From the NCBI GenBank assembly GCA_964234715.1, contig OZ174291.1: a DNA stretch of 64,000 nucleotides; one strand, given 5' to 3'. Below the pieces are notes generated by a model, which was not told where the DNA came from, ran no database searches, and worked only from the letters and a program-made list of their open reading frames with translations. Shown piece by piece: positions 36,460 to 63,595 of the stretch. The stretch's first letter is position 1; each line of letters starts with the position of its first letter. The stretch is from Podarcis melisellensis (Eukaryota). A program made the translations under genes and the position numbers.

Positions 36460-36474
36460 TTATATAAAAAAGAC

Positions 36475-39520: not shown

Positions 39521-40598
39521 ATTGGCAGGTGTGTCTAAAGACAGGGCCAGCCCAATAAATGATGCCGCCTGAGTCCAAGGACAAGATGGCTGCCGCCACC
39601 CTCTTCCAGGAACAAAAGCTGACCAGGCTGGCCATCGAACGTTGGTTCCTCCACTGCACCAGAGGGCAGGAGACCATGGCCACGTTCACACCTGACATAT
39701 AAAGAGCTATCACTTTAACAGTCCCAGCTTCCCCCGTAGCATTCTGGGAGCTGTAGTTTATAAAGGTGCTGAGAGTTGCTAGGAGACCCCTATTCCCCTC
39801 TCAGAGCAGCTACAATTCCCAGAGTTCCCTGTGAAGAGGGTATGGTTGTTAAAATCATTATGGGAACTGTAGCTCCGTGAGGAGAACCGGGGGCCTCCTA
39901 ACAACTCTCAGCACACCTCACAAACTACAGTTCCCATGATTCTTTGTTACCACTATTTAAAGTGGTAACACGGTGCTTTTAACGTGTGGTGTGGCCTTGC
40001 TTAGTGGGTTCAGAACAGGCATACACAGCTCTGCCCATTTTCTGCCCCTCAGTATGTACCGCCTGAGGCAGCAGTCTCACTCTGCCTCATGGCTGAGCTG
40101 GGCCTGTGCATTAGGATTGGGTGGGGTTGTAAGTTGCCCTGAGGTCAGAGGGAAATTAAATGAAGCGACTGCAGATAGCGGCAATTCAGGAGAGAATGTT
40201 TTAATTGTAATTTGGCCATTATTTGGTGGCACCTCCCTTTGAAAGTGTCCAAATATGGCTGCCTTAAAATAAATAGTTGAGTATCTTTGTAGGTTAAAAG
40301 GTCCTCCTACTATCTTCTCAATAGTGCCATTTCTGGTTTTGAATTTGGGTCAGGCAGAGGGATCGGTTAAGCAGAGAGAATCCTGTGTCTTGGATGAACA
40401 AGGGAGGTGGGGAAAGGATGGGTAGTTAGGAATACTTTTGTTGAAGAGGGGGTCCTGAGGAGGGAGGCTTTTACCATCAAGGCTGCACTGATCTTGTCAT
40501 ATTTGCAGGCAAGATAGGAGTCAGGGGCTAGGAATGGAAACCAGAGGGGCCTGACCTTGCAAGGCCCTGAAATGTGACCTCTTTTCTGCTTTGGACAG

Positions 40599-41693
40599 GG
40601 CCACCAAGACAAACTGACACTGAGCCCAGGGATGAACCGTGAAAGGTCCGTCAGCTTTGCGACCCTGCCTGGGCTGAAGAGCCAAGTCACAAACGAGGAG
40701 GACCAGCCTTGGCTGAAGCGACAAGTCTCAAAGGAGGAGTTTCGGACAAAGTCCCAGTTGGACACAAGCATAGGAAGTCGGACGCCGTCCCAACTGAACT
40801 TAAACCAGGGGGTTCGGGCCCCATCCCAGATGAACGCAAGCGAGGCAGTTAGCACCCTGTCACAGATGAACACAAACGATGGGGTACGGACCCTGTTCCA
40901 GATGAATGAGGCAAATAGGGTTCCAGCCCAGATGAACATGACTGAGGGGATGAGGGCCCAATCCCAGGTGGATGAAATGATTGGGAACCCCTCCCAGAGG
41001 AACGTGAACGAGGCAATTTGGACCCCCTCTCAGAGGAACATGAACGAGGTGAACAGGGCCCCCTCCCAGATGAACACGAATGAGGCCATTTGGACCCCAT
41101 CCCAGATGAACACGAACAAGGTGATTTGGACTTCCTCCCAGATGAAAGCAAATGAAGCAGTTTGGACCCCCTCCCAGAGGAACATGAACGAGTTGAAAAG
41201 GGCCCCATCCCAGATGAACATGAAGGAAGCAATTTGGACCCCCTCTCAGAACGAGGTGACTAGGACCCCAACCCAGAATAACATAAACAAGCTAAAAAGA
41301 GCCCCAACGCAGCTGAACATAAATGAAACGGTTGGGACCCCATCCCTTCCACCTCAGCAGGAAGACCAGTCCTCCAGGCCCGAAGAGCAAAGCGGTGGCA
41401 CTCTGTGGAACTTCATGGAGCAGGAGCTGGAAAGGCTTCTGAGCGCCCTACGCCTCCACCGGACCCCCACGCCAACCCCCACGGCTGAGGAGACGCCGGC
41501 CCCCTTGGCCAACGATACTCCGAGTGCCCCAGCTGAGGAGGTGCCGAAACCCACGGCTGAGGAGGTGCTGGGCCTCGACCAGACTGAGGACAAGGAGACC
41601 TTGATGCACCTCATCATCTGTGAAGTCCCCCAAGACAGAGGAGCCACCAGGGGTCGGGGGCGCAAGAGGAAAGCGAGCAGAGGACGCAAATAA
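40599..41693 (+). CDS. Paralog B, exon 2 (repeat-containing cytoplasmic tail)
   Basis: Acceptor CTTTTCTGCTTTGGACAG|GGC is phase 0 and in frame with the 353-aa ORF at 40632. Contains 12-aa SQ repeats, MEQELERLLSALR, DKETLMHLIICEV and a basic tail RGRGRKRKASRGRK. The stop TAA overlaps AATAAA. Spliced product about 459 aa. Confidence 0.78.
   Translation, partial: GHQDKLTLSPGMNRERSVSFATLPGLKSQVTNEEDQPWLKRQVSKEEFRTKSQLDTSIGSRTPSQLNLNQGVRAPSQMNASEAVSTLSQMNTNDGVRTLFQMNEANRVPAQMNMTEGMRAQSQVDEMIGNPSQRNVNEAIWTPSQRNMNEVNRAPSQMNTNEAIWTPSQMNTNKVIWTSSQMKANEAVWTPSQRNMNELKRAPSQMNMKEAIWTPSQNEVTRTPTQNNINKLKRAPTQLNINETVGTPSLPPQQEDQSSRPEEQSGGTLWNFMEQELERLLSALRLHRTPTPTPTAEETPAPLANDTPSAPAEEVPKPTAEEVLGLDQTEDKETLMHLIICEVPQDRGATRGRGRKRKASRGRK
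40743..41345 (+). repeat. Coding minisatellite of about 17 degenerate 36-bp units (consensus about TPSQMNxNEAIW)
   Basis: Recurring ACCCC(C/A)TCCCAGA(T/G)GAAC...GA units. The shorter units (9-10 aa) all keep the reading frame. Confidence 0.9.
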
Positions 41694-42899: not shown

Positions 42900-43190
42900 A
42901 AGACCGCTGTGCCGCGAAGCTATGGCACTCTGCACATGCCCAAGGCGGCGCTTTCCCCTTCTTCTGCGCGACGGGGTGCAGTCTCGCCAGTGACCGGCAG
43001 AGGGCAGCACGAGACAAGCTTTCCTCCTGGGGGGGCGCCTTCGTCAGCTATCCCTCCGCCCCCTCCCCGCTCCCCAAACCCGGCCTCGTTTATCTCCCCG
43101 CCTCTTCGTGTCCGGCCAGGCAGATCCGCGGCGGGGCCGGGATGGGAAGGGCTAAGAGGGGCGCCCTGTAGCGCATCCCGCGCTCTCCAG
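42900..43190 (+). promoter_or_regulatory. CpG-rich promoter and probable non-coding exon 1 of the ITPK gene
   Basis: Local CpG island with GC boxes and a TGACG-type half site (~43041). Strong donor CTCCAG|GTGAGA after 43190, and a matching acceptor TTTCCTTACAG| at 46443, 10 nt before the ATG. Confidence 0.6.
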
Positions 43191-44539
43191 GTGAGAACTG
43201 GGCAGCGGGCAAAGGAAGAAGGGAGTGGTGTCTAGCGGTTAGAGCAGAGGCTGCGGCTTAGCCAGGAAGACTCATTGAGCCCCCAAAGCCACCACTGGGG
43301 GGAGGGGAACGCAGAAAAAGAAAGCGCCCCCCCCCAGCCTGCCAGTTATGGAAGGAGAAGGTGCAACTCTGCCCCAGTTTAGCGATCCGGACTTGGGGCG
43401 CTCAGTTCTCCAGGAGCTACGCTAGGTTTTATGGAGCTTGGGTGGTAGCAGCGTGCCTTTCTCAGGGTGGCGGGTGGGGTCTCCCTTCCCTTGGGTGACA
43501 TCATTTCCCTTGCTGATAGGCGGCTGGGTGGGGAGTAGGCTTTCAGGGACCAGAATCTATTGCTAAAGTCCAAGGTGTGTCTGGAGCAGGAAGAGAGCGC
43601 CTCTGAGGTTGTGCAGAGTGCCTTTGCCTCGCTATCCTGTAGCTGCCAGGGACAACTGCACTTCCAGTTTGGGGGACTAAGGAGAAGGGGGCGAGGGGGG
43701 GAGCGGGTGGCTTCTGGAGGCGCTTGACCCCTGATCACCCTTCCCCTACTTTAAATTTGATGAAAATGGGAATGGATAATGGGACTGATAGATCAGAAGA
43801 AGGGAACCCGTCCCCACCCCAGTCAAAAAGCTGCAGGGCACTTTGGGGTCTATGTTCCCCCCCCCACACACACCCTCCAGCTATGACACAGGAAGCCTGC
43901 TTTATACTGAATCCAAAGCTCAGCCCATCTAGCTCTATGTGGTCTATTATGGGGGTGGTAGGAGGGGGCTGTCCTCCCCCCCCGCCAAAATATCAGGTAC
44001 CATTTCCCCACCTAGCTTTGTATATATCTATTGTATTTTAGGGTTCAGTCTCCCAGCTGAAACCCTGGAATGTAGCTGCCAGTCAGTGTCAACTGTACTG
44101 GCCTAGGTGGAACAATGGTCTGACTTGGTATAAAGTAGTTTTCTGTGAGCCTATGCCCGGGAATGAGCTTGGGATAATTCTGCATGTGATGCATGTGTGA
44201 TGATGGCCACTAAGCAAATGGCCTTCTCCTAAAAAGAAACCAAGGCCCCAGTCCTCATGGTCCAGAATGAAGGGCTGATTTCTATAGGACAGAGGAATCT
44301 GCCTTAGACTGAGCCAGACCCTTGGTACATCTAGGCCAGTGTTGTCTGCACTGACTGACAGTGGCTATCCAGGGTTTCAGGAAGGGAAAATTTCCCAGCC
44401 CTCCCTAGAAGAAGCTGTTGGGCATGGACCCTGGGGCCCTTCTGCATGCAAACCAGGCAAGGAGTTTAAATCAGCACCCTGTTCAGAACACTGATGACTA
44501 GCATCCTCATCGGTTTTGTATGCCAGTAAGCCTGGGCTC

Positions 44540-44890
44540 AGGGACACGGATGGTGCTGTGGGTTAAACCACAGAGCCTAGCACTTGCCGACCAGAAGGTC
44601 AGCGGTTCAAATCCCCGCGACGGGGTGAGCTCCCGTTGCTCGGTTCCTGCTCCTGCCAACATAGCAGTTCGAAAGCACGTCAAAGTGCAAGTAGATAAAT
44701 AGATACCGCTCTGATGGGAAGGTAAACAGCGTTTCTGTGCACTGCTCTGGTTCGCCAGAAGCGGCTTAATCATGCTGGCCTCATGACCCGGAAGCTGTAC
44801 GCCGGCTCCCTCGGCCAATAAAGCGAGATGAGCACCGCAACCCCAGAGTCTGTCACGACTGGACCTAATGGTCAGGGGTCCCTTTACCTT
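44540..44890 (+). mobile_element. Sauria SINE
   Basis: Consensus sequence; TSD TAAGCCTGGGCTC. Confidence 0.9.
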
Positions 44891-45666
44891 TAAGCCTGGG
44901 CTCTACTTCCCAGCTACAGCCCCATCTTCAAAGGTGGTATGGTGCAAGTCATGTTGCTTTTTTTAAACCAAAAAAAGTGCTCAAATGTGGTGTGGGGTGC
45001 GGGGAGACCGATATCCCATAATGAAGCTCATTAGCATTGCTTCCTGAACCCACTTCCCAGTTTCCCACCTAATGTCAGCCCTGGGAGCCAAGTTTTTTTT
45101 TTAATTAATATTTTAATAGAAGCATTTCGTTTATAAGAAGACAGAGGGACAAAAAGAAAGAAAAGAAAAAATCTGAATGAGAATGAAAAAGAGGAAAAAA
45201 TACTCAGCTACATTTCCATATATGAGTATACAGATGTATATAATCTTATTGTCCTAATACACACAAAGTTATCAATAACATAATTTATCCTGCGTAAACG
45301 TATTCCAAATATCATTTGGATTTATCCAAAGAAAGTCTGTGTCTATAAGCTTTCTGTTCATATGTTACCAGTATTGCCACAATTAAGGGGAATTGTATCT
45401 CTCCTCCTCCAGTACATCAACAACAGTCTCTTGGTCACCATTAGGGCTGTCCCTATTTTCGCTGTCCCTTTGTCGATTTCCATACAATGGGCATATAGTT
45501 CAAAAGAATATTCACCTCTGAAAATTTTGATAATTTTTTCTGTAGTGTCTTGTTTATATAGTCCACATCCCCCCCCAAATTTTAGTAAGTGTGGGACATA
45601 GTAAAAGCAGGGGCTAAATAGTTTTCCGCCTGTAATTCAAGCATTGCTGGGAGGAGCAATCCTATA

Positions 45667-45840
45667 CAGTGGACGCTTGGGTTGCGAACGTTATCCGTGC
45701 GGGATGCACATTCACAACCCGCAGCGGTGCGTCTGCGCACACACGGGTTGCGATTTGGCACTTCTGCGCATGCGCGACCCCCGATACCTGGAAGTAACCC
45801 GTTCCGGTACTTGAAGCATCTGTAACCTGAAGTGTGACTG
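45667..45840. mobile_element. Tc1/pogo-type MITE
   Basis: TA-CAGT...ACTG-TA, related to 26284-26504. Confidence 0.7.
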
Positions 45841-46453
45841 TACTTACCAGGAAATACCTTCCCTCCCCCCCCCCCCGCAAAAAAACCCTCCCACAAATCT
45901 CTGGAAACTACTAGTGTCCATCAATAAAGGACTTTGCCAGAATGCCCATGTGCTGCCCTTAGAGAGGGAGACTGTGAACTCATTAGCCAATGAACTAGTA
46001 GCCATTGATAAGTCTCTCTTCCATGAATTGATAAGACCTCTCTTCCACATTTTCCATAGTTCAACTTTGCACTGCGCGAAGGACTTTCTTTTATCCATCC
46101 TAGCTCTTGCAATGTTCAGCTTCAACGGATGTCCAGGATTTGTTATGGGGGAGAGAAGCTTTTCTCCGTGGTCTACGTCCTCCATGCCATGCATATTTTT
46201 TTTATAAAGTCTTACTCACCTTTCCTCTGAACGAAAAAGTCCCGAACACTGCATAGGAAACTCGCTCCACCCCCCCTCCCCGCCTCGATTATGCTGTTGC
46301 CCTTTCCTGGACCTTTTCCAACTGTGCGATACCCGTTTTGAGGCGAGGCGACCAGAGCATAACTTGGATGGCCACGCAAGCTGCTTTTCTTGCCCTTCCA
46401 GCTTGCCCTGCTCCAGTAACACACACTCTTTGTTTCCTTACAGAAAGCTGTGG

Positions 46454-46951
46454 ATGAAGCCGTGCCTGAGTAGCGTCACTTCCAGCTCATCTCAGCAGGC
46501 AACCTTCCCCAGCGGACTCAAGTGGGGCCTGGCCATCCCCATGGAAGGCTATCACAGCCTGGAATGCATCCCTCCTCCACCTGCTGCCGCTGAACCAGAC
46601 CACTGGGAGGCCCCCAATACGCCTCTGGGCCCCCCCTCAGAATCAGAAGCCTTGGTGTGCGGCAGGGGAAGGGATGCCCCCCAAGGGAGGGCGGAATCGC
46701 CACCCTTGGGTGCCTCCCCCAGCAGCAACGGCCTGCAAGGGCCGCCGGCCACGCCTCCCTGTGAGGTTGCCGGAGCGGGGCCCAGCCAGAAGCCCCTTCC
46801 TGGAAGCCAGGAAGCCCCCGTCCCTTTTGACCGCTCTGTCTCGGGCTCATCGACCTGCTCTTCGCTGGGAGGGTCCTCCCAGGAGTCGGACGACGTCTTC
46901 AGCGATGCCGAGGACAGGAGCCCCCTGGGGAAGAAGCGGGTGCTGCGGAAG
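46454..46951 (+). CDS. Inositol-trisphosphate 3-kinase-like gene, coding exon 1 (disordered N-terminus)
   Basis: ATG follows the acceptor. Pro/Ser-rich, ending SVSGSSTCSSLGGSSQESDDVFSDAE, which resembles the Ser/acidic motif before the CaM-binding exon in ITPKA/B/C. Phase-0 donor AAG|GTGAGG. The start codon is inferred. Confidence 0.8.
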
Positions 46952-49900
46952 GTGAGGAGAGGGAGGGGGCAGTTGGGGGTAAAGGCAGCAGGGGAGGGAG
47001 GGGAATCGTGCCCCCCAAAGGAAACAGAGAGCCCCGCCTCAAGGCCCAGCGATTTCAGAGCAGTCAATGGACTGGCTTGCTGTGGCTCTCCAGAACTTGA
47101 GAGGGAAATGTCCTTCTCAGCCCTAAGCCTGGGGCCTTCTACATGCAAAGCAGGGGCTGTACCACTGAGCCCATGGCAAAGTAAGATTTTACCTTAAGTT
47201 TTATGCTGGTTTTAATAGATGTCATTTTTTATTGTATTTTGCTTTAATTTTTTTTGTGTAAAAAAAGAAGAAGTTGCTAATAATAATAATAATACTGGGA
47301 TTTGCGTGGCTAGCTGGAAGGTGAAATGCATACCCTCCAACATTTCTCCCATGAAAATTGGGACATTATATTCAATAATAATAATTTTGCTATTTATACC
47401 CTGACTGGGTTGCTTTATTATAAACTTAATTAAAAAATAGGGACACTTGGAGGGTCTGTAAATGGCGGCATAATTCTGTGTCTCCCGTCACCCCGGGACA
47501 ATAATGAAGCAGAGTGGATCCTATTGACATCTAAACAAAAAGTATTACACAGCCTCAGCAAGGGGATGATCCAAGGAATACGGAGAACCAAAAAGCAAAT
47601 CTGCAAGGTTAGATCTTCAGCAAGAAATAGATGGAGCTCTGTCTGAGGCTTCAGAGGAGACCTCAGATACTGACATGACCAAAGGCAATATGAAGGTCCC
47701 CAAAGGCGGGAAAGTATCTGCCATAATGGAGGAGGACAGAGACTTAGATGAGTATATTAATAATAATAACAACACTTTTCAGGACCAACCTGGCATTTAA
47801 GAGCAGCACAGCAGAGTAGGGTGGGTGGGTGCTGACTGGCCTGGTCACCCAAGATCCAAAGGCTGTGCAATGGCCTTGATGCATCTAGTGCCTCTTCTCT
47901 TAACCTGACCTGACTGAACTCATTGCCAGACCTCCCCACTAGCTATCATTGCCCGGGTACATTGTTGCTCCACATGCTGCAAAATGAGGAAACGTTTCCC
48001 ACTGTGACCTCCCAAGATCTTAGTATAGGGGTCAGAAAAGTGCAGTGCTGCTCTATAAAATGCAGGAAGGTTGTCGTCATCTATAATATTGCTGATATGA
48101 AAAGAAAAATAGTGTAGGAGGCACGAAAAGGATGAAGCACAAAGGCATGTCGCAGGACTTCCAGGCACGACTGCAGATGAGTCAGAGCTACAGTCAGCTT
48201 GAAAAAGCGGTTCCATAGCGAACTTCCTCTCTGCTGGTGCAGAGCATAGGGTTGGAGCCTTTCGCTCTGATTGCATTCACAGCCTCCGTCCTACAACCCC
48301 CTCTCGCCACAGCTGGTGCATCGGGTAGTTTTTAAATGTGGGCCTCATCTTTCACACCCGGCATCCTTCATCTCGGACCACTCCACCTTGGTTCTCATCC
48401 AGGGGACTTTTGCTCCTTCTCCTCTTTACCTTCCCGACTCTTGTACCAAATTTGGGGCAGCACCGTCCCGTTTCTGTCTTAACTTCACTCACTCATCCCT
48501 GCTAACAGGGCTGTGGCATCAAGGAGAGCTTTAGAATTATGAAATTGTTTAGATATATGTCTTGGGCCCAGGCAGCCTGAAGGGTCACATCTCCCTGTAC
48601 AAACCTGCCCAGGTGCTGAGAGCCTTGAGTGAGCACCTTCTCTCAGTCCCATCAACATCAGTTGGTGGTGACCCAAGACAGAGAGACAGAGACTTTTCTG
48701 CAGCTGCTCCCAAATTGTGGGATTCCCTCTCAGAAGAGGTTGGACTGGCTCCCTCCTTGTTTTCCTTCCACTGGCAGACTAAAACCATTTTATTCAGACA
48801 GGCCTGCGAAAACGTAAGTTGCAGGCTTGACCGATCACTGGGCTGCTGTCAGGACAAACTGCATTTTAATTTCTGGTTCTAAATGTTTTCTGGTATTTTG
48901 ATGGTTGCTTTTAACTAGTTTTTATTGCTGTGTTTTAATTATTGACGTGTTCAAACACTGTAAGCCGCCTTGAATCCCACCTTGGGAGGAAGGAAGAATA
49001 TAAGCAGATTTAAGAAGAGTAATATTTATTTATTAAGCCTGTGCGTGTGAAGAGGGGAGCACCCTTTGCAAGAGGACCGCAAGAGGACCTTTGCTTTGTG
49101 GTCCTGGATCATTAGAGATCCCTGGCCAGAGATCTTGCATTTCCAGGGATTCTGCTGCAAGGAGGATCAGGGCCTCTCTCTGGCGGGTGTCAAATCCCCA
49201 TCAGAGCCACCGAGTCAGGCTGACCTGAGGGTGCCCCCAGCAAATGTGCAAGCTGGGAGGCCTGCCTGGAGGGGGCCGGAAAGCGTGACTGTGCTGGGGT
49301 GAGCCTCCAGTTGAAGGTAGAGGATTGTCCTCTACTAACTCACAGCCCCGGGCAGGATGTTGTGGTTCTGCTGCCAGCCCAGCTGACTTGCTCTTGTGCA
49401 GGTCGAAAAAGCTCTTCTGGTGCAACAGCAGCAGCAGAGGCCTCAGCAGGGTTCTGCGGTGGTTGCCGTGTAGAGCGGTTGGGTGTGCGATGGTGAGCTG
49501 TTTGCACGTGCCGCGAGCTCAGGCGCCCTTCCTCCTTGCACAACTGGCCCCGTGCAAGCCGGAGCACACCTCTCTCCTTGCACAGCAGCAGCTCGGCCGA
49601 GATTTCCCTGTTGCTAAGCAAAGTGCTCTCTCCCCCTGACAAAGGCCTTTCCCTTCCTCTTTTCAAGGCTGAGTCTCGGCTGCTTCCTCCAAGACGGGTT
49701 TCCTCTGGCTGTGGTTAGAAATGCTGATGAATGAACTGGAGGGAAGAAAGGGGGAGGGGAGACTTGACAAGCCTCCTCCTCCTCTGCTTGGCAGGCTTCT
49801 TCTCTCTCGGCTTGTCTTTGCTGGGTCCCAGGAAAAAAGCCTCTTCTCACCCTCTCCTGTTTCCTGGGCTGCGTCTCAGGGCCAGTCCTGAGCAGGTCCA

Positions 49901-51205
49901 GCATCAGGGTTCAGCCTTGCTGGCTTCTGGGGTTGCAGGTTGCGCTGAATGAACAGAGTGGTGGGGCAGGGGAGTGTGATGGAGGCTTCCCCCCACCAGT
50001 GGCATGGCTTCGCTGAGGCTGGGTTAACCTTGGTCCAGTTTCTGCCTCCCAGCCTAACCTACTTTGCAGGTGGGAATTAACCAAGGACTCAGGCCTGGGA
50101 GGGTTCAAATCCCCGCTTGGCCACGAGGCTCACCGGGTGACCTTGGGCCAGTCACTGCCTCGCAGCAGTGACCTACCTCGCAGGGTTGTTGTCAGGGATG
50201 AATGTCGGGAGGGGGAGAACAATGCACACCACTTTGAGCTCCTCGTGGGGGGGGGGGGAAGCTGGGATAGAAATGCAACAAGTAATTGGGAGGGCTCCCA
50301 AGAGAGGGGAGAGGAGGCTGAGGGAACCCTCCCCAAGGGAGGGTGTTTGAAAAAGAGTGAGAGGCTGCCAGCTCTGCAGGCAAGGGGTGACATAACTGGG
50401 CTCCTGAGCCCCACGGGGGTGCCGCAGAAAAGAATGTAGTTGGCTAAGTGAGCCGCGTGGACTCAAAACGGTTGAAAACCTCTGCCATACGGGTATCGAA
50501 CCTGCAACCTTGTCATTATCAGCACCACATTCTAACCAACTGAGCTTCGTTTTTTGTTTTTGTTTTTCTTAATTGTTTTGTGTTCTCATTTTGTATTTTT
50601 ACATTGTTAACTGCCCTGTGATCTTCAGATGAGCGGTGGTATACAATTTTAATAAATAGTAATAGTAATAGTGATAGAAATCCCTTAGCAACTTGGGATC
50701 AGTTTACCTACAAGACTGCCTGACTCCGTATGCGCCCACTCAACTCCTTCGATCTGCAGAACTGGCTCTGTTACAGGGGCCACATAATACCCGTTCTGCA
50801 GTGGTAAGGATTCAATCTTCTAGTGAGGCAGGACCTACATGTTGGAACTCCCTGCTGACTGAGATCAGGAAGGTGCCTGCACTATACTCTTTTCGGTGTC
50901 TTCTAAACAAATTTTTGTATAGGCAAACCTACCCAGATGTTTAGAAAGCTGATGTGAATTTTAACCTATTGTTATTTAAGTTTTCTGATGTCTTCTTGTT
51001 AATTTTAGTGATCGTTTTGATGTTTTATCTTTTTTTTGTAAACCACTTTGTTGTTCTCTGCAATCAAGAGGTGCGTACATTTTATGAAGTAAATTAAGAA
51101 GTAAATAAATATAAAGCCCTCCGCCTGACCCCCCCCCTGGATCTGTGCAACTTCCTGTTTTCCCCCATCATCTCGTAACGGTCCCTGTCTTGGAATATTT
51201 CCTAG

Positions 51206-51290
51206 ACCAAGTCCTGGAAGACGTTCTTCACGATGGTGCACTGGTCCTTGCGGAGACGCAGCTCTTGGGTCCAGCTGGCCGGCCACGAAG
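51206..51290 (+). CDS. ITPK-like coding exon 2 (calmodulin-binding region to WVQLAGH)
   Basis: TAG| acceptor; TKSWKTFFTMVHWSLRRRSSWVQLAGHE; phase-1 donor AAG|GTAC. Confidence 0.92.
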
Positions 51291-52221
51291 GTACCACTAC
51301 AGGACCGGGGGGGGTGGGGTTGCATGTTGGAAGCCGGGTCCAGGAGGGGAGGTGGCCAATGCAACAGCTGCAAAGGAATCGGGGCCAGATGGATCTCCCC
51401 CACTGCAGCTTAGAAGAAGCCACTGGATCTGAGGATGCAGCGGGTAGCCCTTTCCCTTCTCCACAGTTTATTTCTGCCTCCCCAGGACCACAAGCCAGGG
51501 TTTCCGTGGGGCTCTTGGGCAAACTTAAGCACTTTGTCTCAGTTTCACCAACTTGGATGGGTTTAAAAGAGGACGGGGCAAATTCATGGAGGTAAAGAAC
51601 CTAAGCAGAGCCCTGCTAGATGAAACCAAGGGCCCATCTTTAGTCCAGCCTCCTGTTCTCACAGTGGCCAACCAGATGCTTGTGGGAAACCCACAAGCAG
51701 GACCCGAACACAAGAGCCCTCTCCCCTCCGGTGGCTTCCAGCAACTGGTGTTCAGAAGCATTTACTGTCTCCGCCTGTGGAGGCAGATACCTCTCTCCTC
51801 CATGAATTCATCCAGTCCTTTTTCAAAGCCGTCTAGGCTGGCGGTCACAGCGCTGCCTCCTGCGGGAGCAAGTTCCATAGATTAACGATGTGCTGCGCAA
51901 ATGGTAATAGATGCGTGCAATAGATTTGCCACTTCTTATGCTCTTCTGCAAGCAGGGGGACAATTGTGGACTCCCTCCAGGGTTGTAGAAGATGTGTCTA
52001 CGATTGCCAGTTGCCGAAAAGCACAAATCAGGGGAGTGTTGCTGTTGCACTCGGGTCCTGGATTCCAGTTGGTGTATCTGGCCATAATACTGGACTGAAT
52101 GGTGTGCGCGCACACACACACACACATTCTTTGGCTTGATCCAGCCGCCACTGCAGGTCTTTTACTGTGCTTCCTTCCCCTCCCTCTGTTTCTTCTGACC
52201 ATCCTCGTTCTTTCCCCCCAG

Positions 52222-52435
52222 GGAATTTCAAGCCCAGCGAAGGAGGCCAGATTCTGAAGAAGTTCAGCTCGGTGGAAGACGCCTGTCTGGCAGAGCTGAT
52301 GGCCGACGTCCTGCGCCCCTTCGTGCCCGCCTACCACGGGGTGGTGGAGGTGGGGGGCGAACGCTACATCCAGATGGACGACCTGTTGTGCGGCCTTGAC
52401 ATGCCAAGCATCATGGACTGCAAGATGGGCACCCG
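52222..52435 (+). CDS. ITPK-like coding exon 3 (kinase N-lobe, PxxxDxKxG motif)
   Basis: [14 protein letters not shown]...[12 protein letters not shown]...[11 protein letters not shown]; 214 nt with canonical AG/GT boundaries. Confidence 0.96.
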
Positions 52436-53819
52436 GTGAGAGCAGGACCTTTCTGGGGGAAAGGGGTGGGCATAGGAGGCTCCTTCATCTCAGGTGAGAC
52501 AGGAGGGGGTGAGGGGAGGGCAGAAGTCCCACAGGCACTGAAGGTGGCTTTGGGATGGAGAAGAAGATATATCCCAGGACTGTCTTCACCACTGAGCGAA
52601 GGTCATCACCAAAGGTCAGCTTGCATGGCGCTTTTCCACAGTTGTAAGTCGCCTTGAGCAGAGTTTTAGCATGCAGATACAATGGTACGTAATCCGTTCC
52701 CGAAGACCATTTGACTTCCGAAACGTTTGAAAAACAAGGTGCAAAGGGCGACCGGCAAATTCCATTGAGAAAATTGAAAAACACGCATTCGGCTTCCAAG
52801 GTGCGTTCGGAAACGGAAGCATTTTCGGTGTTTGGGTTCCGAAACGTTCGGCGTGAAAGCAGCCAGAATCAGTAAATAAAAACACATTGAAACGTATGAT
52901 GCAGAATTAAAACAATCCCCATACAAGTCACAATCAGATCGAAATATGCAAATAATAATAATAATAGCAAAATTAAACAGCGCCAGAATTCAATATCAAC
53001 CCCTACAAAACAACAACAACAACCCTCTAAGCAATACCCCACCCCAAGAGCCTGGAGGCAGCCTGTGAAGCAGGTTCTGAAGGACTTGCAGCCAGGATGG
53101 TCTCTGACTTCTTTGCCAGCCTCCGTTTTTGTAGCTGGAGTCAGTTAGATGGAAAGGCAGGAATGGGTAAGGTCCTAGAATCATAGAGTTTAAGGGACCC
53201 TGAGGGCCATCTAGTCTGACCCCCTGCAATGCAGGTCAGTGTCAGCAAGGTGGAATCGGAGGCTGTAGCTGGGTCGCCAGCAGTGGTCTGTGTTTCGCAT
53301 CTGTCTGTTGCATAAGTGGGGGGTTTTTTGGGTGATGCAGGCCTGCCGATAATAGCAGCCAGATGTGGGAGACTGCAGAGCTAGCGTGTGGGCGAATCAC
53401 TAACCGGACATCCCAGATGGATCTGCCTTGTACTGAGGCAGACCCTTGGGCCCATCTAGCTCAGTATTGCCTGCATTGACTGGCAGCAGTGGTTCCCAGG
53501 GTTTCAGGGAAGGCCTTTTCTCTGCCCTACCTAGAGGCACCACCAGGGATTGCCTCTGGGGCCTTCTGCAAACAAAACACTGACCCTCCCTCCCCCAACA
53601 TTGCAGCCAGTCCTCCTCCTTGTCCCACTCTACCACTCCCTAAGAAAATGAGAAGATCCAGTCCAGCTTCCTGTTCTCCCATTGGCTGCCCAGATGTTCA
53701 TTCGGGGAAGTCTGCAAGCAGGACCCCAGCACGAGAACCCTCTCTCCTCCGGTGCTTTCCAGCAACTGGTTTTTTGGAAGCAGTGCTGCCTTCCCTGAAC
53801 ACCTCCTGTTTCTGCCCAG

Positions 53820-54024
53820 GACGTACCTGGAGGATGAGCTGTCGGAGGCGCAGCAGCGGCCAGCGGCACGGCGTGACCTGTACCAGAAGATGGTGAAAGT
53901 CGACCCGCAGGCCCCCACCGCACAGGAGCACAGCCAGGGCGGCGTCACCAAGCCGCGGTACATGCAGTGGCGTGAGGGGATCAGCTCCAGCGCCTCCCTG
54001 GGCTTCCGCATCGAGGGAGTCACG
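53820..54024 (+). CDS. ITPK-like coding exon 4 (inositol-binding IP lobe)
   Basis: TYLEDEL...[17 protein letters not shown]...[25 protein letters not shown]; 205 nt; donor ACG|GTGAGT. Confidence 0.96.
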
Positions 54025-54077
54025 GTGAGTGGCGGCGACAGCCGAGCAGGAGGTAGAGAAACGGGGTGATAGTAACT

Positions 54078-54185
54078 CCTGCCCAGTATTGCAGGAATAT
54101 GCAGCTGTCCAGTACGGGGACTGAACCTGCAACCTTGGCATTATCAGCACCCCACACTAACCAGCTGAGCTATCCAGCTGGTCCC
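54078..54185 (-). mobile_element. tRNA-Ile(GAT)-derived short SINE (lacertid POM-like); related head at 50485-50548
   Basis: Minus strand reads GGATAGCTCAGCTGGTTAG...GGTGCTGATAATGCCAAGGTTGCAGGTTCAG...GGACAGCTGCATATTCCTGC. Matching GGGGTTGGACTAGATG-type tails are scattered through the window. Confidence 0.6.
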
Positions 54186-54191
54186 AATAAA

Positions 54192-54194
<3 letters not shown>

Positions 54195-54243
<49 letters not shown>
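54195..54243 (+). repeat. (AAT)n microsatellite at the end of a retroelement fragment in an ITPK intron
   Basis: About 16 perfect units. Confidence 0.95.
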
Positions 54244-54244
<1 letters not shown>

Positions 54245-54618
54245 TATTTTTGTTTATACCCCGCCCTTCCTGGTTCAAAGACTGGGCTCAGGGCAGCTAA
54301 CAACAAATTTAAAACACTTAATTGTAAAAGCAGCATAAAATACAGTATAAAAACATGAATAACAATAAAATTCAAAATGCAGAAATGAATTTAGGGGAAA
54401 TAAGCATTAGATAATCACCAGGGCTAGCTGGCTGAATTGGTCCTACTTGGGCTAGTGAGGAGGCCGGGGGGAGAATTAGCTGTGGGGTCTCCGAGCGGGT
54501 AATCTTCATAAAAGGAGAGGGGGGGAAAGAAAGGGGAACTAAAGACCAGGCTGAATTCAAATTATTATTATTATTATTATTATTAGAACACCCCCCACCC
54601 CAATCTCTTTCTCTGCAG

Positions 54619-54720
54619 ATCGAGGGGGGAGCCGTGCGGAAGGATTTCAAGCAGACTCGCACCAAGGAGCAGATTGTGGATACTTTCCTGATGTTCACCA
54701 AGGCCCGCCTCGACGTTCTG
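54619..54720 (+). CDS. ITPK-like coding exon 5
   Basis: IEGGAVRKDFKQTRTKEQIVDTFLMFTKARLDVL; 102 nt, phase 0/0. Confidence 0.92.
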
Positions 54721-55295
54721 GTGAGACTGGTTGGGGGGAGACAGTGGGAGCAGGGGGCGAAATCTCAGCCACTGGGTGTCCCCCCCCCCCGTCCTCTGTA
54801 CCTGGACTGCTCATTCTCAACCTGAAATAGAAGTTCACCTGATATTCACAGGAATGTTGCCCACCAGCATACTTCTGGTGCTTTTCAAGCAGTGAAGTAT
54901 AAACTTGACAGGTTTAGCACTTCACAACAACACCCCCCCCCCCCGCCCATAATTCAACAGCACCAAAGTTGAGTTCCAGTGAGAGGAATGGAGATTTCTC
55001 ATTGGGAGAGCTGTGGCCCTGTCATGTGGGATGGGGGCGTGGGACTGGTCTCTCCCGTGTTTTGAAACCTCTGGCTTCTGTGTGGTGGGAATGTAGCCTC
55101 CCATATCAAGGTAGGCATCTTGCCCCTCCCATGTTTTGCCCCCAGCCCGGCCTCCTGTTCACGTGTGGCACTCAGAAGTCGGCCCACAAGGACTTAACTG
55201 AGATGGCAAAATTAACATGTTCAGTGAGAGAAAAATCATTACTGACATTCATTGGGATCCTCTTTTAGTGAGAAAGACAAAATAAACTTGTAATA

Positions 55296-55852
55296 CAGTG
55301 GTACCTCAGGTTACATACGCTTCAGGTTACATACGCTTCAGGTTACAGACTCCACTAACCCTGAAATATTGCTTCAGGTTAAGAACTTTGCTTCAGGATG
55401 AGAACAGAAATTGTGTTCCGGCGGCGCAGCGGCAGCAGGAGGCCCCATTAGCTAAAGTGGTGTTTCAGGTTAAGAACAGTTTCATGTTAAGTACGGACCT
55501 CCAAAACGAATTAAGTACTTAACCCGAGGTACCACTGTATCTGGATTTGAAGATGGGGAAAATATTGGCATATGGAAAATAGAATAGTTGGATGCTAATG
55601 AGTGAATACAGTTGTACCTTGGAAGTCAAACGGAATCCTTTCTGGAAATCCGTTCAACTTCCAAAATGTTCGAAAACCAAATCACGGCTTCTGATTGGCT
55701 GCAGGAGGCTCCTGAAGCCAATCAGAAGCCGCAGGAGCCCCGTTGGGCGTTCAGGTTCCAAAAGAATGTTTGCAAACCAGAACAATCACTTTGCAGTGTT
55801 CGGGAGCCAAAACATCTGAGTTCCGGGGCGTTTGGGATCCAAGGTACGACTG
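55296..55852. mobile_element. Two adjacent Tc1/pogo-type MITEs (55296-55537 and 55609-55852)
   Basis: CAGTGGTACCTC/GAGGTACCACTG and CAGTTGTACCTTGG/CCAAGGTACGACTG TIRs, each with a TA TSD. Confidence 0.8.
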
Positions 55853-56195
55853 TACTATATTTATGGTGTATTATAAAAAGATACTATTGGTATGAACTTT
55901 TGCATATCTTTTGATAAGTATGAATAAAAATATATTTTTTCTTTAAAAGAAGTTTGCCCGTGAGAAAATACTATCCTGGGACTGAAAAAGCAGCCAATGT
56001 AGCAGAAACACATTTAAAGTTAAGACAGGTCCCTGTTCTATTTCTGCCCTTGAATTCCATGCCACCTGCCAGTTTAGCCAAGGCTTCCGTGACCTGCCTC
56101 TCCTAGCAAGGGGCACAGGTGTATATGGGGGGGGGGGCTTGGCCTTGATGGGGGGGACCCCATCCAAAGCCTCAATGCTCCCTCTTGCCTTGCAG

Positions 56196-56267
56196 AGCAC
56201 ATATGCAGCCCGCTTGGAGAGCATGCGCCAGGTGCTGGAGGAGTCTGCCTTTTTCAAGACCCATGAG
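56196..56267 (+). CDS. ITPK-like coding exon 6
   Basis: STYAARLESMRQVLEESAFFKTHE; 72 nt; donor GAG|GTAAGG. Confidence 0.93.
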
Positions 56268-58480
56268 GTAAGGCTGTCAGGGCAGGGGGAGGTTAAATTG
56301 TTTGTTCATTGTATTTATTTAAATCCCACCTTTATCTCCCAGGAGCTCATGATGGCACACACGGTTTCTGCCCCCCATTTAATCCCCACAACCACCCTGT
56401 GAGGTAGGTTAGGCTGAGAGGCAGGGACTGGCCCAAAGCTTCATGGTGGCTGAGGCAGGATTCGAACCCTGGTCTCCCCTAGGTCCTAGTCTGCCACTCT
56501 CAGGAATGGGAGACAGAGGAGAAAAAGGCCCTGCAAGTGTGTCTCTAGGACCTGCTGGATGTCTTTAACTGTGACTGGGCTGGTTTGTTATACTTTGTTT
56601 TTAGGCTTCTTCTTTTTTGGTCCTCTTTTGATTTCGAGGGTGCCTGCTCATGTAGAAAAGCAGGATATAAATTCACAAACACCAAAAACAGATTGTTATT
56701 TTTATTGTTCCCATTTATTCTTATACTAACAACAAACCCTAAGCCTATGGGATCCTCCCTTCACCCTTCTAGGGGGAAGCCTCTGGAGAGGAAAGGGGGG
56801 GGTGCAGAATATGACAAAAGGATCCCCCCTCCCGTAGGCGAGGGACTCTCCCCAGATGTGGGACAAAACCTAGGTGCTTTGTGGCTCAGTGTGAAGATGT
56901 GGACAGGACCTGTGGCCACTCTCCTTCCAGCGGCTTCTTGCTTCCCTCTCCCTCAGCATGCACTCTCTGGGGTGGGATTGGGGAACCGGTGGCCTTTGAG
57001 ATGCAGCCGGACTACAACTCCCATCACCCCTGAGCAAAAGGCCCTGCTTGTCTGGAGTCCGGAGAGCCACCAACCTAAACAGCTTTAAAAAGAGTAGAGG
57101 AATTAGACAAGGTGACACGCAACATAACACTAGACTGCCTGGATAGAAGGTAAAGCTGAATGTTAGAGGATTCTGGGCAGGTCAAAGAAAGTCCTTCTTT
57201 ACGCAGAACAGCGTTAAACTATGGAACTCACTCCCACAGGAGGCAGTGATGGTTTTAAAAGGGGACTGGCCAAATTCACAGGCTATGCTTCTGAATCGCA
57301 GTTGCTGCAAACCATGGGAGGGGAGAGTTGCTCTGGATCTCAAATCCTGTTTGTGGGTTTCCCATCAGTGCGTCTGCTTGGCCACTATGAGAACAGGATG
57401 GTGGGTCCCAAATGGCCTGATCCAGCAAGCTCTTTTCAGGTGCTTTTGGCACCCCATCCCTGCCACAGATGCAGCTCTTAAACCGACTTTAGCCGCAATT
57501 GCCAAGGACAGGCCCTTCACATTTCCAGCTCCTAAAACCAAGCCTGAGGGAACGACTGCCTCCTTGGCGCCCTCCTTTCCTGTCACCTTGCCAAAGCTGT
57601 TGCGTTGGATCCAGGAAGGTACATCTTAAGAGTCTGAGCACCTCCAGGACCGCCCTGAGGCTTGTAAAATGAGAGGAGCTCTTGGCTCACACTCCTGGCG
57701 GTAAACGCAGGTGGGGAGTGCCGGCAGGAATCAGGCCAAGGCAGGCCACTGAAACACCAAGGGGATGTTTGGTTTGCAGAAGTAGTGTGTGGGGAGTAAC
57801 CCTAAAGGAGCAGCTTCCCCTCCTCCAACAAACCAATGAGGGCTGAGATGAAAACATGAACAAAGATCTTACAAAAGAAGCAACTCTAGTACTCGAGTCT
57901 ATCGCTGATTTCAAGCCAGACTTGTTTGGTTTACCATTGTTTTTATTTTAGTTTGATTTTTAAAGCATTTTAATTTAGCCATATTGATTTCAGGGAAGAA
58001 TAGGCTTTTTAGCAGGGAGCTATAGTTTTGTGGTTAAATGTTTTAATTCCTTGTGTTTTTATCTTGCATTATTTACTTGTGTTTTTGTCTTGTAATTTAT
58101 TCTGTGAACTGGCCTGAGAACTTGTGATGCACAGTATATAATTTTTAATGGTTATTTTAAAGCAGCCAGTGGGGTGGCGGGAGACAGAATGGGAGTGCCC
58201 TGCGTGGAGGGAAAAGCAATCTGCAACTCTAGGAGGAGAGGCTGTTACAGGGCAGAATTTGTTGCTTTTTGACTCTCATCTTAGCTGAGAGGGGAAGGGG
58301 AAGGTGCTTTGCATATGCCCAGAGGAAACCCACCCTGCCTGAAGGCAACAGAGCCCAAGATAATCCTGTAGAAAATGGACTTATGGGCCAGACCAGAGGG
58401 GCAAAACCCTCGCTCGGTTGCTGTCCCTGTGAGCTGCCCACCTGAGGTTCCTAAAAAGCACTACTTTTTACACCCCTCAG

Positions 58481-58726
58481 GTGATTGGGAGTTCCTTGCT
58501 CTTCCTCCACGACCGGAAGGGCCAAGCCAGCGTCTGGATGATTGACTTTGGCAAGACACTACCCGCCCCGGAAAACCTCCCCTTGCAGCACAGCGTGGCC
58601 TGGGCCCCTGGGAACCACGAGGACGGCTACCTGATTGGCCTGCAGCACCTCATTGACACCGTGCAGGCCACTCTGCGGAAGGCGCAAGAACGGGGGCAAG
58701 TGCCGGCGCCCCCTGCCCACCCTTGA
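58481..58726 (+). CDS. ITPK-like last coding exon (SSLL and IDFGK motifs)
   Basis: [11 protein letters not shown]...VWMIDFGKT...[11 protein letters not shown]...; stop TGA at 58724-58726. The whole spliced CDS is 1422 nt (473 aa) with consistent phases. Confidence 0.96.
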
Positions 58727-59561
58727 GCTTGCCCGGAGGATGTCCTCCGTTGGGCGAATCTGGACGGGCACCCAACCAAAGGAGGGGAGATCCCAAGGCT
58801 GTATTAACTGTAACGGCAAGCACGCTGCAGAACGGGGCCCCGATGGGATCCAGCAATGACGTTGCCGCACTTGTTGCCTACCCAAAGGAGGACTAGCCTT
58901 CCTGCTGTCAGGAAGTAGCAGGGAGGGGAGTTGCAGCCTTCTGGGACCAGGGAGGAAGACCGGGAGCATCTTGGGACGCCCAGAGATCAACAAGGGAGCG
59001 TGTAGGAACGCAGCAACGCTCCCGAGGTTGGCACTGCCATAGGAATGAGCCAGTCCTCCCACCGATTCCCTTTGCTCTGGCTGGGAGGGACACCTGGGAG
59101 GTGCAGAGACACCTGAACTGGACAGTGGCAAGAGTAGACCCCAGGCTGGAGTGGGTGGGAGGCAGAGGCTGGTGCCGTAACCTTACAGCCAAGGGGAGCT
59201 TTGAGCTCAGACCACCCGCACCTCATTTGTGGCACATCACAAAGCTCAGGTGAGCCGGGTGGGATGAAGGAACCCCAGCGCCTTTCTCTCTGTGCATTCA
59301 TAGATTGAGACGCACATACCTGGGCAGTCAGGGGGCACCCAGGTAGCGGAGCCTGGGTTTTTGTGGAGGAAGGAGCAGATTCTGTCCTGCAGGGTTGTTC
59401 CCCCCCCCTCCAAGGCCCACATGAACCCACAGTGGTCCTGAGCCCAGTGTGGGGCTGAGGGGGGCACACTGGCACTCAGCCAGAATGGGTGGGAGCTGCA
59501 GATAGGGCCTGTCTGGGATCCAGCGGAGGCTGGGAAGGAGGCTGGACTTTCTATTCTCTTC

Positions 59562-59575
59562 AATAAAAAAATAAA
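59562..59575 (+). terminator. Polyadenylation signals of the ITPK-like gene
   Basis: Tandem AATAAA about 840 nt after the stop, followed by a GT/T-rich stretch. Confidence 0.65.
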
Positions 59576-60280
59576 ACCCTTTGCGTGCTTCTGGGCTGTG
59601 CCCTACTCAGTCTTGGCCCTCAGCCCATGGCCAGCTACTCTGAAGCTTCTGTTTCCCCCAAAAGAAACAAATTCTATTGCAGTCAAACCCCTAGGATGAC
59701 GAGGACTGCCTCACAGCCTCTGCCCCCTGCAAGCAAGCAAGCGGTTAGGGAACTGCCTGGACATTCCCTGCCAGCCTACAAGTGACTGGGGCTGGGCCAA
59801 GGCAGTGGCGTAGCGTGGGGGGTGCAGGGGGGGCCGGCCGCACGATGTGGGGGTTAGGGTTAGGGGGCGCAAATCCACGGGGTAGGGGGCACAAATTACT
59901 TGCCTTGCCCCGGTTGCTGACAACCCACGCTACGCCACTGGGCCAAGGTGGAATTCATAGAATCACAGAATTGTAGAGTTGGGATTGTGTGGGTCGTCTA
60001 GTTCAACCCCCTGCAATGCAGGAACTGCAGCTACAGGATCCCTGACAAATGGCCCCCAGAGCTCTGTTCAAAATTCTCCAGTGAAGGAGAGCCCACCACC
60101 TCCCAAGGCAGTCCGTTCCACTGTCAAGACAGTCAGAAAGTTCATCCTAATGGAATCTGCTTTCTTGTCATTTGAATCCAGTACGTCTGGGTGCTATCTT
60201 CTGGGGCAGCACCTAACAAGCTTGCTCCACCTTCTGTGTCGCAACCCTTCAGATATTTGAAGATGGCTATCCTATCCCCA

Positions 60281-60631
60281 GGGACACGGGTGGCGCTGTG
60301 GGTTAAACCACAGAGCCTAGGACTTGCCGATCAGAAGGTCGGCGGTTCAAATCCCCGCGACAGGGTGAGCTCCCGTTGCTCAGTCCCTGCTGCTGCCAAC
60401 CTAGCAGTTCAAAAGCACATCAAAGTGCTAGTAGATAAATAGGTACTGCTCCAGCGGGAAGGTAAACGGTGTTTCCGTGCGCTGCTCTGGTTCGCCAGAA
60501 GCGGCTTAGTCATGCTGGCCTCATGACCCGGAAGCTGTATGCCGGCTCCCTTGGCCAATAAAGCGAGATGAGCGCCGCAACCCCAGAGTTAGTCACGACT
60601 GGACCTAATGGTCAGGGGTCCCTTTACCTTT
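60281..60631 (+). mobile_element. Sauria SINE
   Basis: Consensus sequence; TSD TATCCTATCCCC. Confidence 0.9.
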
Positions 60632-63358: not shown

Positions 63359-63595
63359 TCAGTCCTGAGCCTCTTCTGAGCGCCACTTCAGGGACTCCTC
63401 CTTCCGGGCGTCGGGCTTGATCTGGTTGCGCATACCGCCCAGGAGGTTGGAGGTGGCTTCCGAGGCCACGATGAGGGGCTTGACCACGGTGGGAGGGATC
63501 TGCCGCAGGACGCCTCCCACCGCCCCGGTGATGCCTTTCTGCTCGTGGCCACGAGTCGCCACGTCGCAGATGGCCTGGGCTGTGTCGATGACACC
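63359..63595 (-). CDS. ATG2A: Autophagy-related protein 2A, last coding exon
   Basis: Acceptor CTTCTTTCTCCAG|. Translates GVIDTAQAICDVATRGHEQKGITGAVGGVLRQIPPTVVKPLIVASEATSNLLGGMRNQIKPDARKEESLKWRSEEAQD*, matching the ATG2A C-terminus; syntenic with EHD1. Confidence 0.95.
   Translation of the reverse strand, partial: GVIDTAQAICDVATRGHEQKGITGAVGGVLRQIPPTVVKPLIVASEATSNLLGGMRNQIKPDARKEESLKWRSEEAQD

Follow-up and report, generated by a model that had tools for sequence, protein, structure and literature searches.

The window, a stretch of 64,000 nucleotides from the lizard Podarcis melisellensis, harbors a gene for an inositol 1,4,5-trisphosphate (IP3) 3-kinase, here designated ITPKD, which occupies positions 46454 to 58726 of the plus strand and is divided into seven coding exons. 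The spliced model, based on motif positions and splice sites, comprises 473 codons with a single, terminal stop codon, and all introns show GT..AG borders. A sequence-only reading of the same DNA had described an intact 473-aa coding sequence in seven coding exons, which the splice-site model confirms, and the exon sizes given there (214, 205, 102, and 72 nt) are exact. Coding exon 1 (46454 to 46951; 498 nt) starts with the ATG at 46454, encodes 166 aa of a disordered Ser/Pro-rich N terminus, and ends at a phase 0 donor (AAG/GTGAGG, at 46952); it shows 96% identity, with no gaps, to the coding sequence of Podarcis lilfordi. An acceptor-like CAG lies just 5' of the ATG, ending at 46443. Exon 2 (51206 to 51290; 85 nt) shows AG/GT borders and encodes the calmodulin-binding-type segment KSWKTFFTMVHWSLRRRSSWVQLAGHE with its clade-specific 5-residue deletion. 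The N-lobe with the PSIMDCKMG motif is contained in exon 3 (52222 to 52435; 214 nt), and the InsP3-binding helical lobe, with a Thr in place of a near-invariant Lys, is contained in exon 4 (53820 to 54024; 205 nt). These are followed by exon 5 (54619 to 54720; 102 nt) and exon 6 (56196 to 56267; 72 nt), both with AG/GT borders, and by exon 7 (58481 to 58726; 243 nt plus the stop codon), which follows the acceptor CAG/GTG and carries SSLL, IDFGK, and GNHEDG.

Spliced transcript contigs of 1.5 to 2.4 kb from related lizards (4 runs, 4 studies) join exons 2-3-4-5-6 at the exact predicted junctions, among them those of exons 3, 4, and 6, which indicates that close relatives transcribe the gene and splice it as modeled. 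The junctions 51290/52222, 54024/54619, and 54720/56196 are each present in 4 runs. The contigs include about 50 to 90 nt of upstream sequence beyond exons 1 and 2 and extend about 1,184 nt past exon 5, placing the transcript end near 59.59 kb. The 3' untranslated region (58727 to 59595, plus strand) contains two AATAAA signals, at 59562 and 59570, consistent with the 3' end proposed from the sequence alone. A weak CpG-rich patch at 42.5 to 43.5 kb (GC content, 0.64; CpG observed/expected ratio, 0.57 to 0.78) includes a putative promoter or untranslated first exon on the plus strand (42900 to 43500), which starts at the 5' limit given in the sequence-only reading. Single exons or the annotated ortholog P0003 (473 aa, 96.4% identical) served as queries in the database, PDB, and family searches, and the joined spliced sequence was used for the alignment, the trees, and dN/dS; the conclusions also stand for P0003 by itself. 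Comparison with P. lilfordi gives a dN/dS of 0.148 for the whole coding sequence and 0.067 for exons 2 to 7, the kinase part.

The flanks of the gene contain further conserved features, all on the minus strand. The first coding exon of an EHD gene is found at 10992 to 11459, with matches to Pfam EHD_N and Dynamin_N and to EHD2 and EHD4 in the PDB (207 to 216 bits); full-length EHD entries in the PDB are those of EHD2 and EHD4 only, so the paralog is assigned as EHD1 by position and not by sequence. Precursors of mir-192/215 (22429 to 22506; Rfam RF00130, 61 bits) and mir-194 (24058 to 24139; Rfam RF00257, 68.6 bits) follow. The last coding exon of an ATG2 gene at 63359 to 63676 matches residues 1860 to 1938 of human ATG2A with 129 bits as well as the C-terminal end of Pfam ATG2_CAD. 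The only ATG2 entries in the PDB are those of ATG2A, and the choice between ATG2A and ATG2B is therefore made by position. The flanking context of the earlier reading is thus real, with EHD1 and ATG2A named by position. ITPKD and ATG2 are arranged tail to tail. The window contains no N.

The assignment to the IP3 3-kinases is supported by matches of exons 3, 4, and 7 to the Pfam family IPK (PF03770; 47 bits for exon 7), by the same family precomputed on P0003, and by PDB matches to ITPKA, ITPKB, and ITPKC only. The catalytic motif set of the ITPKs (PxxxDxKxG, SSLL, and IDFG) is complete, and the presence of all catalytic motifs noted earlier holds, with WVQLAGH, DCKMG (within PSIMDCKMG), IDFGK, and GNHEDG. 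In the alignment, the catalytic Lys and the Asp of IDFG are invariant in 75/75 sequences, as are the equivalents of K264, R285, K312, Y315, R319, D416, and K419, and that of M316 is almost invariant; for K264 and M316, the functions in ITPKA have been described (PMC10876669). Judged by this alignment, ITPKD keeps every residue that in ITPKA positions ATP and the substrate's 3-OH, 4-phosphate, and 5-phosphate. The helical InsP3-binding lobe, which is specific to ITPKs and separates them from IPMK and IP6K, is fully conserved. How long an IP3/calcium signal lasts is determined by IP3 3-kinases, which also produce IP4. By homology, ITPKD is predicted to be an ATP-dependent kinase acting on the 3-hydroxyl of Ins(1,4,5)P3 to form Ins(1,3,4,5)P4, an activity that would end the IP3 calcium signal and yield IP4.

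N-terminal to the kinase core, the putative calmodulin-binding segment has lost 5 residues in every ITPKD member and shows a change from K to T; in this shortened form, it is still basic and Trp containing. The Lys-Lys pair after RIEG (K336-K337 of human ITPKA) is absent from the clade: the first position of this pair is T, M, or V in 90/91 ITPKD sequences, compared to K or R in 117/125 other sequences, invertebrates included. K336 of human ITPKA presumably has a structural role, and the pair lies next to the substrate-pocket strand. Given the deletion and the missing Lys-Lys pair, ITPKD may differ from ITPKA, ITPKB, and ITPKC in its regulation or in its affinity for the substrate. Several changes that had been taken as private to the lizard protein have a wider distribution. 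In GVT for GIK, the T for K is a signature of the whole ITPKD clade, GNHEDG is common to all tetrapod members, and DLY is squamate biased; MVHWS, once listed as a B-like trait, is ancestral, being present in hemichordates.

A maximum-likelihood tree of the kinase domains, as proposed in the earlier reading, places the gene in none of the ITPKA, ITPKB, and ITPKC clades. In a careful IQ-TREE search with 75 kinase domains, ITPKD forms a clade with support values of 100/100, next to 97/95 for ITPKA, 98/95 for ITPKB, and 97/98 for ITPKC. It includes sequences of sharks, rays, coelacanth, lungfish, bichir, gar, bowfin, teleosts, amphibians, turtles, and squamates, and it lies outside the three other clades, each of which has cartilaginous-fish members of its own. 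A FastTree analysis of 216 sequences recovers the same four clades, with 91 tips in ITPKD. Several paralogs coexist within species or groups: B-clade, C, and D sequences in Hemitrygon, B and D in lungfish and in cobra, and A, C, and D in Anolis.

The tail-to-tail pair of ITPKD and ATG2 is also found in another lizard, a turtle, Xenopus laevis, and a bichir, so that an ATG2-adjacent ITPK gene is present in three nonsquamates. The proposed microsynteny thus holds for lizards, turtle, frog, and bichir but not for gar, bowfin, and the teleost Seriola, in which ITPKD lies between BSCL2 and NXF1 (plus RNASEH2C). Across seven species, every neighbor seen is the ortholog of a gene of human 11q12-q13, a region which carries EHD1, mir-194-2/192, and ATG2A. 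Three cartilaginous fishes (sharks and rays) show no neighboring gene within 10 kb of ITPKD and are not informative on synteny. An ATG2 exon was looked for and not found in the shark and ray flanks, and neither was a microRNA at the shark, ray, and bichir loci.

These results make it highly probable that vertebrates have a fourth IP3 3-kinase orthology group, represented in the lizard by this gene and most likely the remaining member of the quartet produced by two rounds of genome duplication in early vertebrates (2R). Of the features expected of a 2R quartet, two are found: a distinct, un-nested clade of cartilaginous and bony vertebrates, with a late origin from ITPKB rejected by the approximately unbiased (AU) test, and one conserved chromosomal block, with ATG2 neighbors or BSCL2/NXF1 and with sharks and rays not informative. 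Tree and synteny thus support the fourth-paralog interpretation of the sequence-only reading, in which the 2R part was an inference. The group is older than the last common ancestor of the jawed vertebrates, and the 2R origin, judged from location and taxon spread, appears the most likely one because the ITPKD locus always falls within the counterpart of human 11q12-q13. An ancient small-scale duplication, probably of ITPKB, in an ancestor preceding the jawed vertebrates, with the copy landing by chance in an 11q13-type region, seems unlikely. It is favored by the highest pairwise scores of ITPKD being those with ITPKB, by the long stem branch of the clade (0.28), by cartilaginous-fish loci that are uninformative on synteny, and by the low support for the deep order of the four clades. 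Rooted on invertebrates, the maximum-likelihood topology is ((A,C),(B,D)), with values of 85/85 for A plus C and 29/45 for B plus D, and a grouping of D with A is not rejected by the AU test (p-AU, 0.37); the tree hence does not demonstrate the symmetric branching that 2R would predict. Against the small-scale duplication stand the 11q12-q13 orthology of all neighbors in the seven species and the position beside multiparalog families (EHD, ATG2, and mir-194/192). In the human genome, EHD1/2/4, mir-194-1/215 versus mir-194-2/192, and CDC42BPA/B/G map near the ITPKA, ITPKB, and ITPKC genes or in the same paralogy blocks, to which the ITPKD block would be paralogous.

The idea of a squamate- or tetrapod-specific duplicate, or of a relocated true ortholog of ITPKA, ITPKB, or ITPKC, has a negligible probability and is refuted by the 100/100 clade and the AU test. 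Its attraction lies in the RefSeq names of the members ("ITPKB-like," "ITPKA-like," and "ITPKB") and in exon 3, whose best PDB score is that of ITPKB (2aqx, 82.9 bits). The clade, however, includes sharks and rays, its specific changes are common to sharks through lizards, and a forced grouping of tetrapod ITPKD with ITPKB is rejected (delta lnL, 123; p-AU, 2e-7). Separate A, B, and C genes, which the earlier reading had wanted confirmed for this species, are present in other squamates (Anolis A P0193 and C P0158, Lerista A P0180, and cobra B P0097). The statement that the gene is not a relocated A, B, or C gene holds accordingly, with a clade of its own in cartilaginous and bony vertebrates. 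Very improbable, too, is a decaying or noncatalytic relic with an open frame but no working IP3 kinase, as could be imagined from the loss of the near-invariant basic pair beside the substrate-pocket strand and from the shortened calmodulin-binding-type segment. The low dN/dS of the kinase part (0.067), the intact frame across all jawed-vertebrate classes having ITPKD, the splicing and expression in related lizards, and the invariance of the catalytic Lys, the Asp of IDFG, and the substrate-binding residues argue against it.

ITPKD has been retained under purifying selection in cartilaginous and ray-finned fishes, coelacanth, lungfish, amphibians, turtles, and squamates. Of the ITPKD-type matches in protein sets and trees, none comes from a mammal, a bird, or a crocodilian. 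ITPKD is absent from mammalian protein sets, as read from the lack of a mammalian protein in the clade, and to this extent the earlier claim of a loss in mammals stands. It is apparently absent from the bird and crocodilian protein sets as well; in birds, this could be an artifact of assembling GC-rich microchromosomes.

Among the known ITPKs, ITPKB (mouse, 2AQX) gives the best PDB score, with 381 bits and a gapless 275-residue alignment at about 60% identity. It shares the layout of seven coding exons and all catalytic and substrate motifs with ITPKD, with which it is weakly grouped in the maximum-likelihood tree. In contrast, ITPKB forms its own clade (98/95) with orthologs in sharks, lungfish, turtles, and snakes, shows a much longer N terminus (about 880 to 940 aa in tetrapods, compared to about 430 to 480 aa for ITPKD), and keeps SPFVM and the Lys-Lys pair, which are missing in ITPKD. 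Its locus is also different, in humans 1q42. ITPKA (human, 1W2C, 8PP8, and 9QGK) is closer in size (461 versus 473 aa) and homologous upstream of the kinase domain, with an acidic Ser-rich motif and the Trp-containing calmodulin-binding-type segment; WREGISSS is identical in both. Unlike ITPKD, its clade (97/95) groups with ITPKC (85/85), and its PDB score is lower (336 bits). The N-terminal region of ITPKA binds F-actin and probably has no counterpart in ITPKD. ITPKC (human, 2A98) shows the same IPK fold and motifs but the lowest similarity (306 bits) and its own clade (97/98).

Work on these enzymes assumes three isoforms, following the number found in mammals. The literature yielded nothing relevant on a fourth IP3K group, and the only dedicated evolutionary paper found (BMC Genomics 2024; PMC11000326), covering 8 vertebrate species, recognizes clades A, B, and C only. 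Those authors describe an expansion of the IP3Ks with the early vertebrate genome duplications, A and C as sisters, and six introns in most animal IP3K genes. The present results agree on the early-duplication expansion, on the A/C sisters, and on the six introns; the D group is not separated there. The gene is already annotated in RefSeq as "ITPKB-like." The result adds a modest step to what is known of gene-family evolution, and the kind of system is not new; a fourth ancient isoform, selectively maintained in most other jawed vertebrates, would complete the expected four-member set.

It is conceivable, and no more than a tentative proposal, that ITPKD has diverged in function from the other IP3 kinases and is more than a redundant fourth copy and that the Xenopus "Itpkb" may be ITPKD. 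In the case of divergence, the loss of the Lys-Lys pair and the shortened segment would change IP3 affinity or calcium/calmodulin control. The changes that set the clade apart, both in its regulatory segment and close to the substrate pocket, offer a natural experiment on enzyme tuning. The Xenopus enzyme published as "Itpkb" (XM_002938844) reportedly speeds wound healing and marks small secretory epidermal cells; if it is ITPKD, these functional data have been credited to the wrong mammalian counterpart. Other frog or fish studies of "itpkb" or "itpka" may likewise concern a gene without a mammalian ortholog. RefSeq names of ITPKD members are inconsistent ("ITPKB-like," "ITPKA-like," and even "ITPKB"), sometimes with two "ITPKA" entries in one species, and recognition of ITPKD corrects this mixture of A, A-like, B, and B-like names.

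The kinase gene of the window belongs to a fourth ITPK orthology group, here termed ITPKD or D, which is ancient, conserved and expressed and is without any mammalian protein. Trees were built with FastTree from 216 kinase domains and by a careful IQ-TREE search from 75 kinase domains, and the two agree. In the latter, with support given as ultrafast bootstrap/SH-aLRT, the window gene falls within a D clade supported at 100/100, besides the ITPKA (A; 97/95), ITPKB (B; 98/95) and ITPKC (C; 97/98) clades. This bears out the proposal of a fourth family member distinct from A, B and C, made from the sequence alone. D splits into a cartilaginous-fish subclade (100/99) and its sister, a bony-vertebrate subclade, with internal branching that follows the species tree. 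Cartilaginous fishes are also represented in A (Callorhinchus), B (Pristis, Hemitrygon, Pristiophorus and Stegostoma) and C (Hemitrygon). Single species or groups carry D together with other paralogues: B and C in Hemitrygon, B in the lungfish, A and C in Anolis, B in the cobra and A in Lerista.

Placing the tetrapod D genes and ITPKB in a single clade was rejected, at a cost of 123 log-likelihood units (p-AU of 2e-7). The maximum-likelihood tree rooted on the invertebrate group takes the form ((A,C),(B,D)), with the A+C grouping supported at 85/85 and the B+D side at only 29/45; a grouping of D with A is not rejected by the topology test (p of 0.37). An origin of D in the two early vertebrate genome duplications (2R) is proposed as probable and put no more firmly, because the deep topology is weakly supported and the shark loci show no synteny. 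The lamprey proteins P0140 and P0144 both lie outside the D clade, without a clear place in A, B or C, and P0140 does not have the five-residue deletion of D.

When the kinase portion of P0003, the annotated orthologue from Podarcis lilfordi, was used in a word search, the top relatives were proteins of ∼430 to 480 residues named "ITPKB-like," "ITPKA-like" or "ITPKB." Many squamates, turtles, caecilians and frogs contribute such proteins, as do the axolotl, coelacanth, lungfish, bichir, bowfin, gar, sharks and rays; longer teleost proteins come next in the list. Down to true ITPKB at ∼390 bits, this list contains no protein from birds, crocodilians or mammals. Cluster representatives were also searched exhaustively without a profile, which supplied ITPKA, ITPKB, ITPKC, lamprey and invertebrate sequences; names were retrieved for 30 of these. 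Partial sequences omitted from the tree all have their best match within the same taxa. The sole mammalian candidate, from Myotis, is of B type. Judged by protein sets, birds and crocodilians would appear to have lost the gene; genes on bird microchromosomes are often missed.

Translation, location of the ITPK motifs and exon borders define a plus-strand gene with seven coding exons: a disordered exon 1 (46454-46951), exon 2 (51206-51290), exon 3 (52222-52435), exon 4 (53820-54024), exon 5 (54619-54720), exon 6 (56196-56267) and exon 7 (58481-58726), with Pfam IPK matches in exons 3, 4 and 7. All introns start with GT and end with AG in consistent phases, and the joined frame of 473 codons contains one stop only, at its end. 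The exon sizes of 214, 205, 102 and 72 nt in the sequence-only reading match these borders exactly, all five ITPK motifs listed there are exact, and AATAAA occurs at 59562 and again at 59570, consistent with its 3' end. At its putative untranslated first exon, a weak CpG-rich patch near 42.9 kb is the sole feature found.

Transcript contigs, the P. lilfordi match and dN/dS show that the gene is intact, that it is spliced and that purifying selection acts on it. Contigs from four runs of four studies on closely related organisms, all small and with the run type "RNA?" being a guess, were aligned over 51150-56300. In each run, one contig of 1.0 to 2.4 kb omits exactly 51291-52221, 52436-53819, 54025-54618 and 54721-56195, the four predicted introns. 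The protein is identical to P0003, a RefSeq model, at 456 of 473 positions without gaps, and the P. lilfordi genome shows the same exons with identical borders. The dN/dS ratio between the two species is 0.148 overall, 0.067 for exons 2 to 7 and 0.40 for exon 1. Single exons or P0003 served as search queries, the joined model being used for alignment, trees and dN/dS only. Within the introns, the stretches 51494-51837, 53042-53557, 54074-54589 and 55278-55800 show very high summed contig depth in all four runs, peaking at ∼400,000 at 55.3 to 55.6 kb, and numerous loose contig ends; they represent high-copy interspersed repeats abundant in transcript assemblies.

The only solved structures matched by the kinase are ITPKB, ITPKA and ITPKC. 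Its domain aligns with the ITPKB crystal sequence without gaps, and the equivalents of ITPKA K264, R285, K312, Y315, R319, D416 and K419 are invariant, M316 being nearly so. On the basis of this alignment and these residues, Ins(1,4,5)P3 3-kinase activity is the best-supported, predicted function of D. According to PMC10876669, K264 recognizes the 3-OH, and M316 makes a van der Waals contact.

Three changes mark D throughout, in sharks as in lizards. Between MVHW and WVQLAG, the clade lacks five residues (SPFVM or similar), leaving a Trp-Trp spacing of 7 residues in 90 of 91 D sequences compared to mostly 11 to 13 elsewhere; the corresponding segment of ITPKA and ITPKB binds calmodulin. Leu replaces Phe before PxxxDxKxG (89/91 in D, with Phe in 117/125 others). 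The Lys-Lys pair after RIEG is gone: 90 of the 91 D sequences have T, M or V at its first position, where 117/125 others, including invertebrates, have K or R; ITPKA Lys336, a putative phosphate contact, serves here as a lead only. These changes suggest that calmodulin control or substrate affinity may be altered. Residue changes earlier regarded as private to the window gene prove to be shared: T for K is clade-wide, GNHEDG tetrapod-wide and DLY mainly squamate.

The gene is flanked on one side by an EHD first exon (10992-11459, minus strand) and the mir-192 (22429-22506) and mir-194 (24058-24139) precursors, and on the other by the last exon of ATG2 (63359-63676, minus strand), which matches the extreme C terminus of human ATG2A. 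The two precursors lie between the EHD and kinase genes on the minus strand, 1.6 kb apart, and appear to correspond to the human MIR194-2/MIR192 cluster. The window shows the order EHD1, MIR192/MIR194-2, ATG2A of human 11q13.1; compared to the human order, the kinase and two unrecognized genes sit between the microRNAs and ATG2A. Open frames without a Pfam match occupy 33655-41693 on the plus strand, especially the open reading frame (ORF) 40632-41693, and one frame encodes 353 residues with ∼10-residue repeats of the N-E-A-I-W-T-P-S-Q type. The equivalent position in P. lilfordi (L007:1515-4834) carries an annotated gene of 459 residues, and a 139-residue gene lies upstream of the turtle kinase (L002:3628-9986).

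ATG2 lies tail-to-tail with D within 5 kb in P. lilfordi, loggerhead turtle, Xenopus laevis and the bichir Erpetoichthys. The pairing, whose absence outside squamates would have spoken against the sequence-only reading, is thus at least as old as the bony-vertebrate ancestor. Ray-finned fishes above bichir carry D between BSCL2 (Seipin) and NXF1 rather than by ATG2: Seipin and NXF1-type genes are the neighbors in gar (L001), an unnamed and an NXF1-type gene in bowfin, and RNASEH2C, BSCL2 and an NXF1-type gene in Seriola (loci L008 and L009 for the latter two fishes). In human, BSCL2, NXF1 and RNASEH2C likewise map to 11q12-q13, and the placement of D in these fishes is a local rearrangement inside the same 11q12-q13-type region. 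At three shark and ray loci, where the D genes are very long, no neighboring gene is within reach.

One dedicated study divides vertebrate IP3 3-kinases into three clades (PMC11000326), and no publication recognizing a fourth was found in the literature searched. D gene models are already in RefSeq under inconsistent names (A, A-like, B or B-like). Two Pimephales "ITPKA" proteins (P0106 and P0295) fall one in A and the other in D, and the names of the Chanodichthys proteins P0094 and P0294 are likewise inconsistent. Since the X. laevis D protein P0052 carries the NCBI name "ITPKB," the Xenopus "itpkb" (XM_002938844) that features in wound-healing studies and marks small secretory cells may be the D paralogue. 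Elsewhere in the window, minus-strand ORFs at 1285-1605, 6015-6242, 44507-44818 and 60409-60558 share a recurring peptide-like frame, …GAGVQLPGHEASMTKPLLANQSS…, most likely one dispersed repeat family and not several genes.
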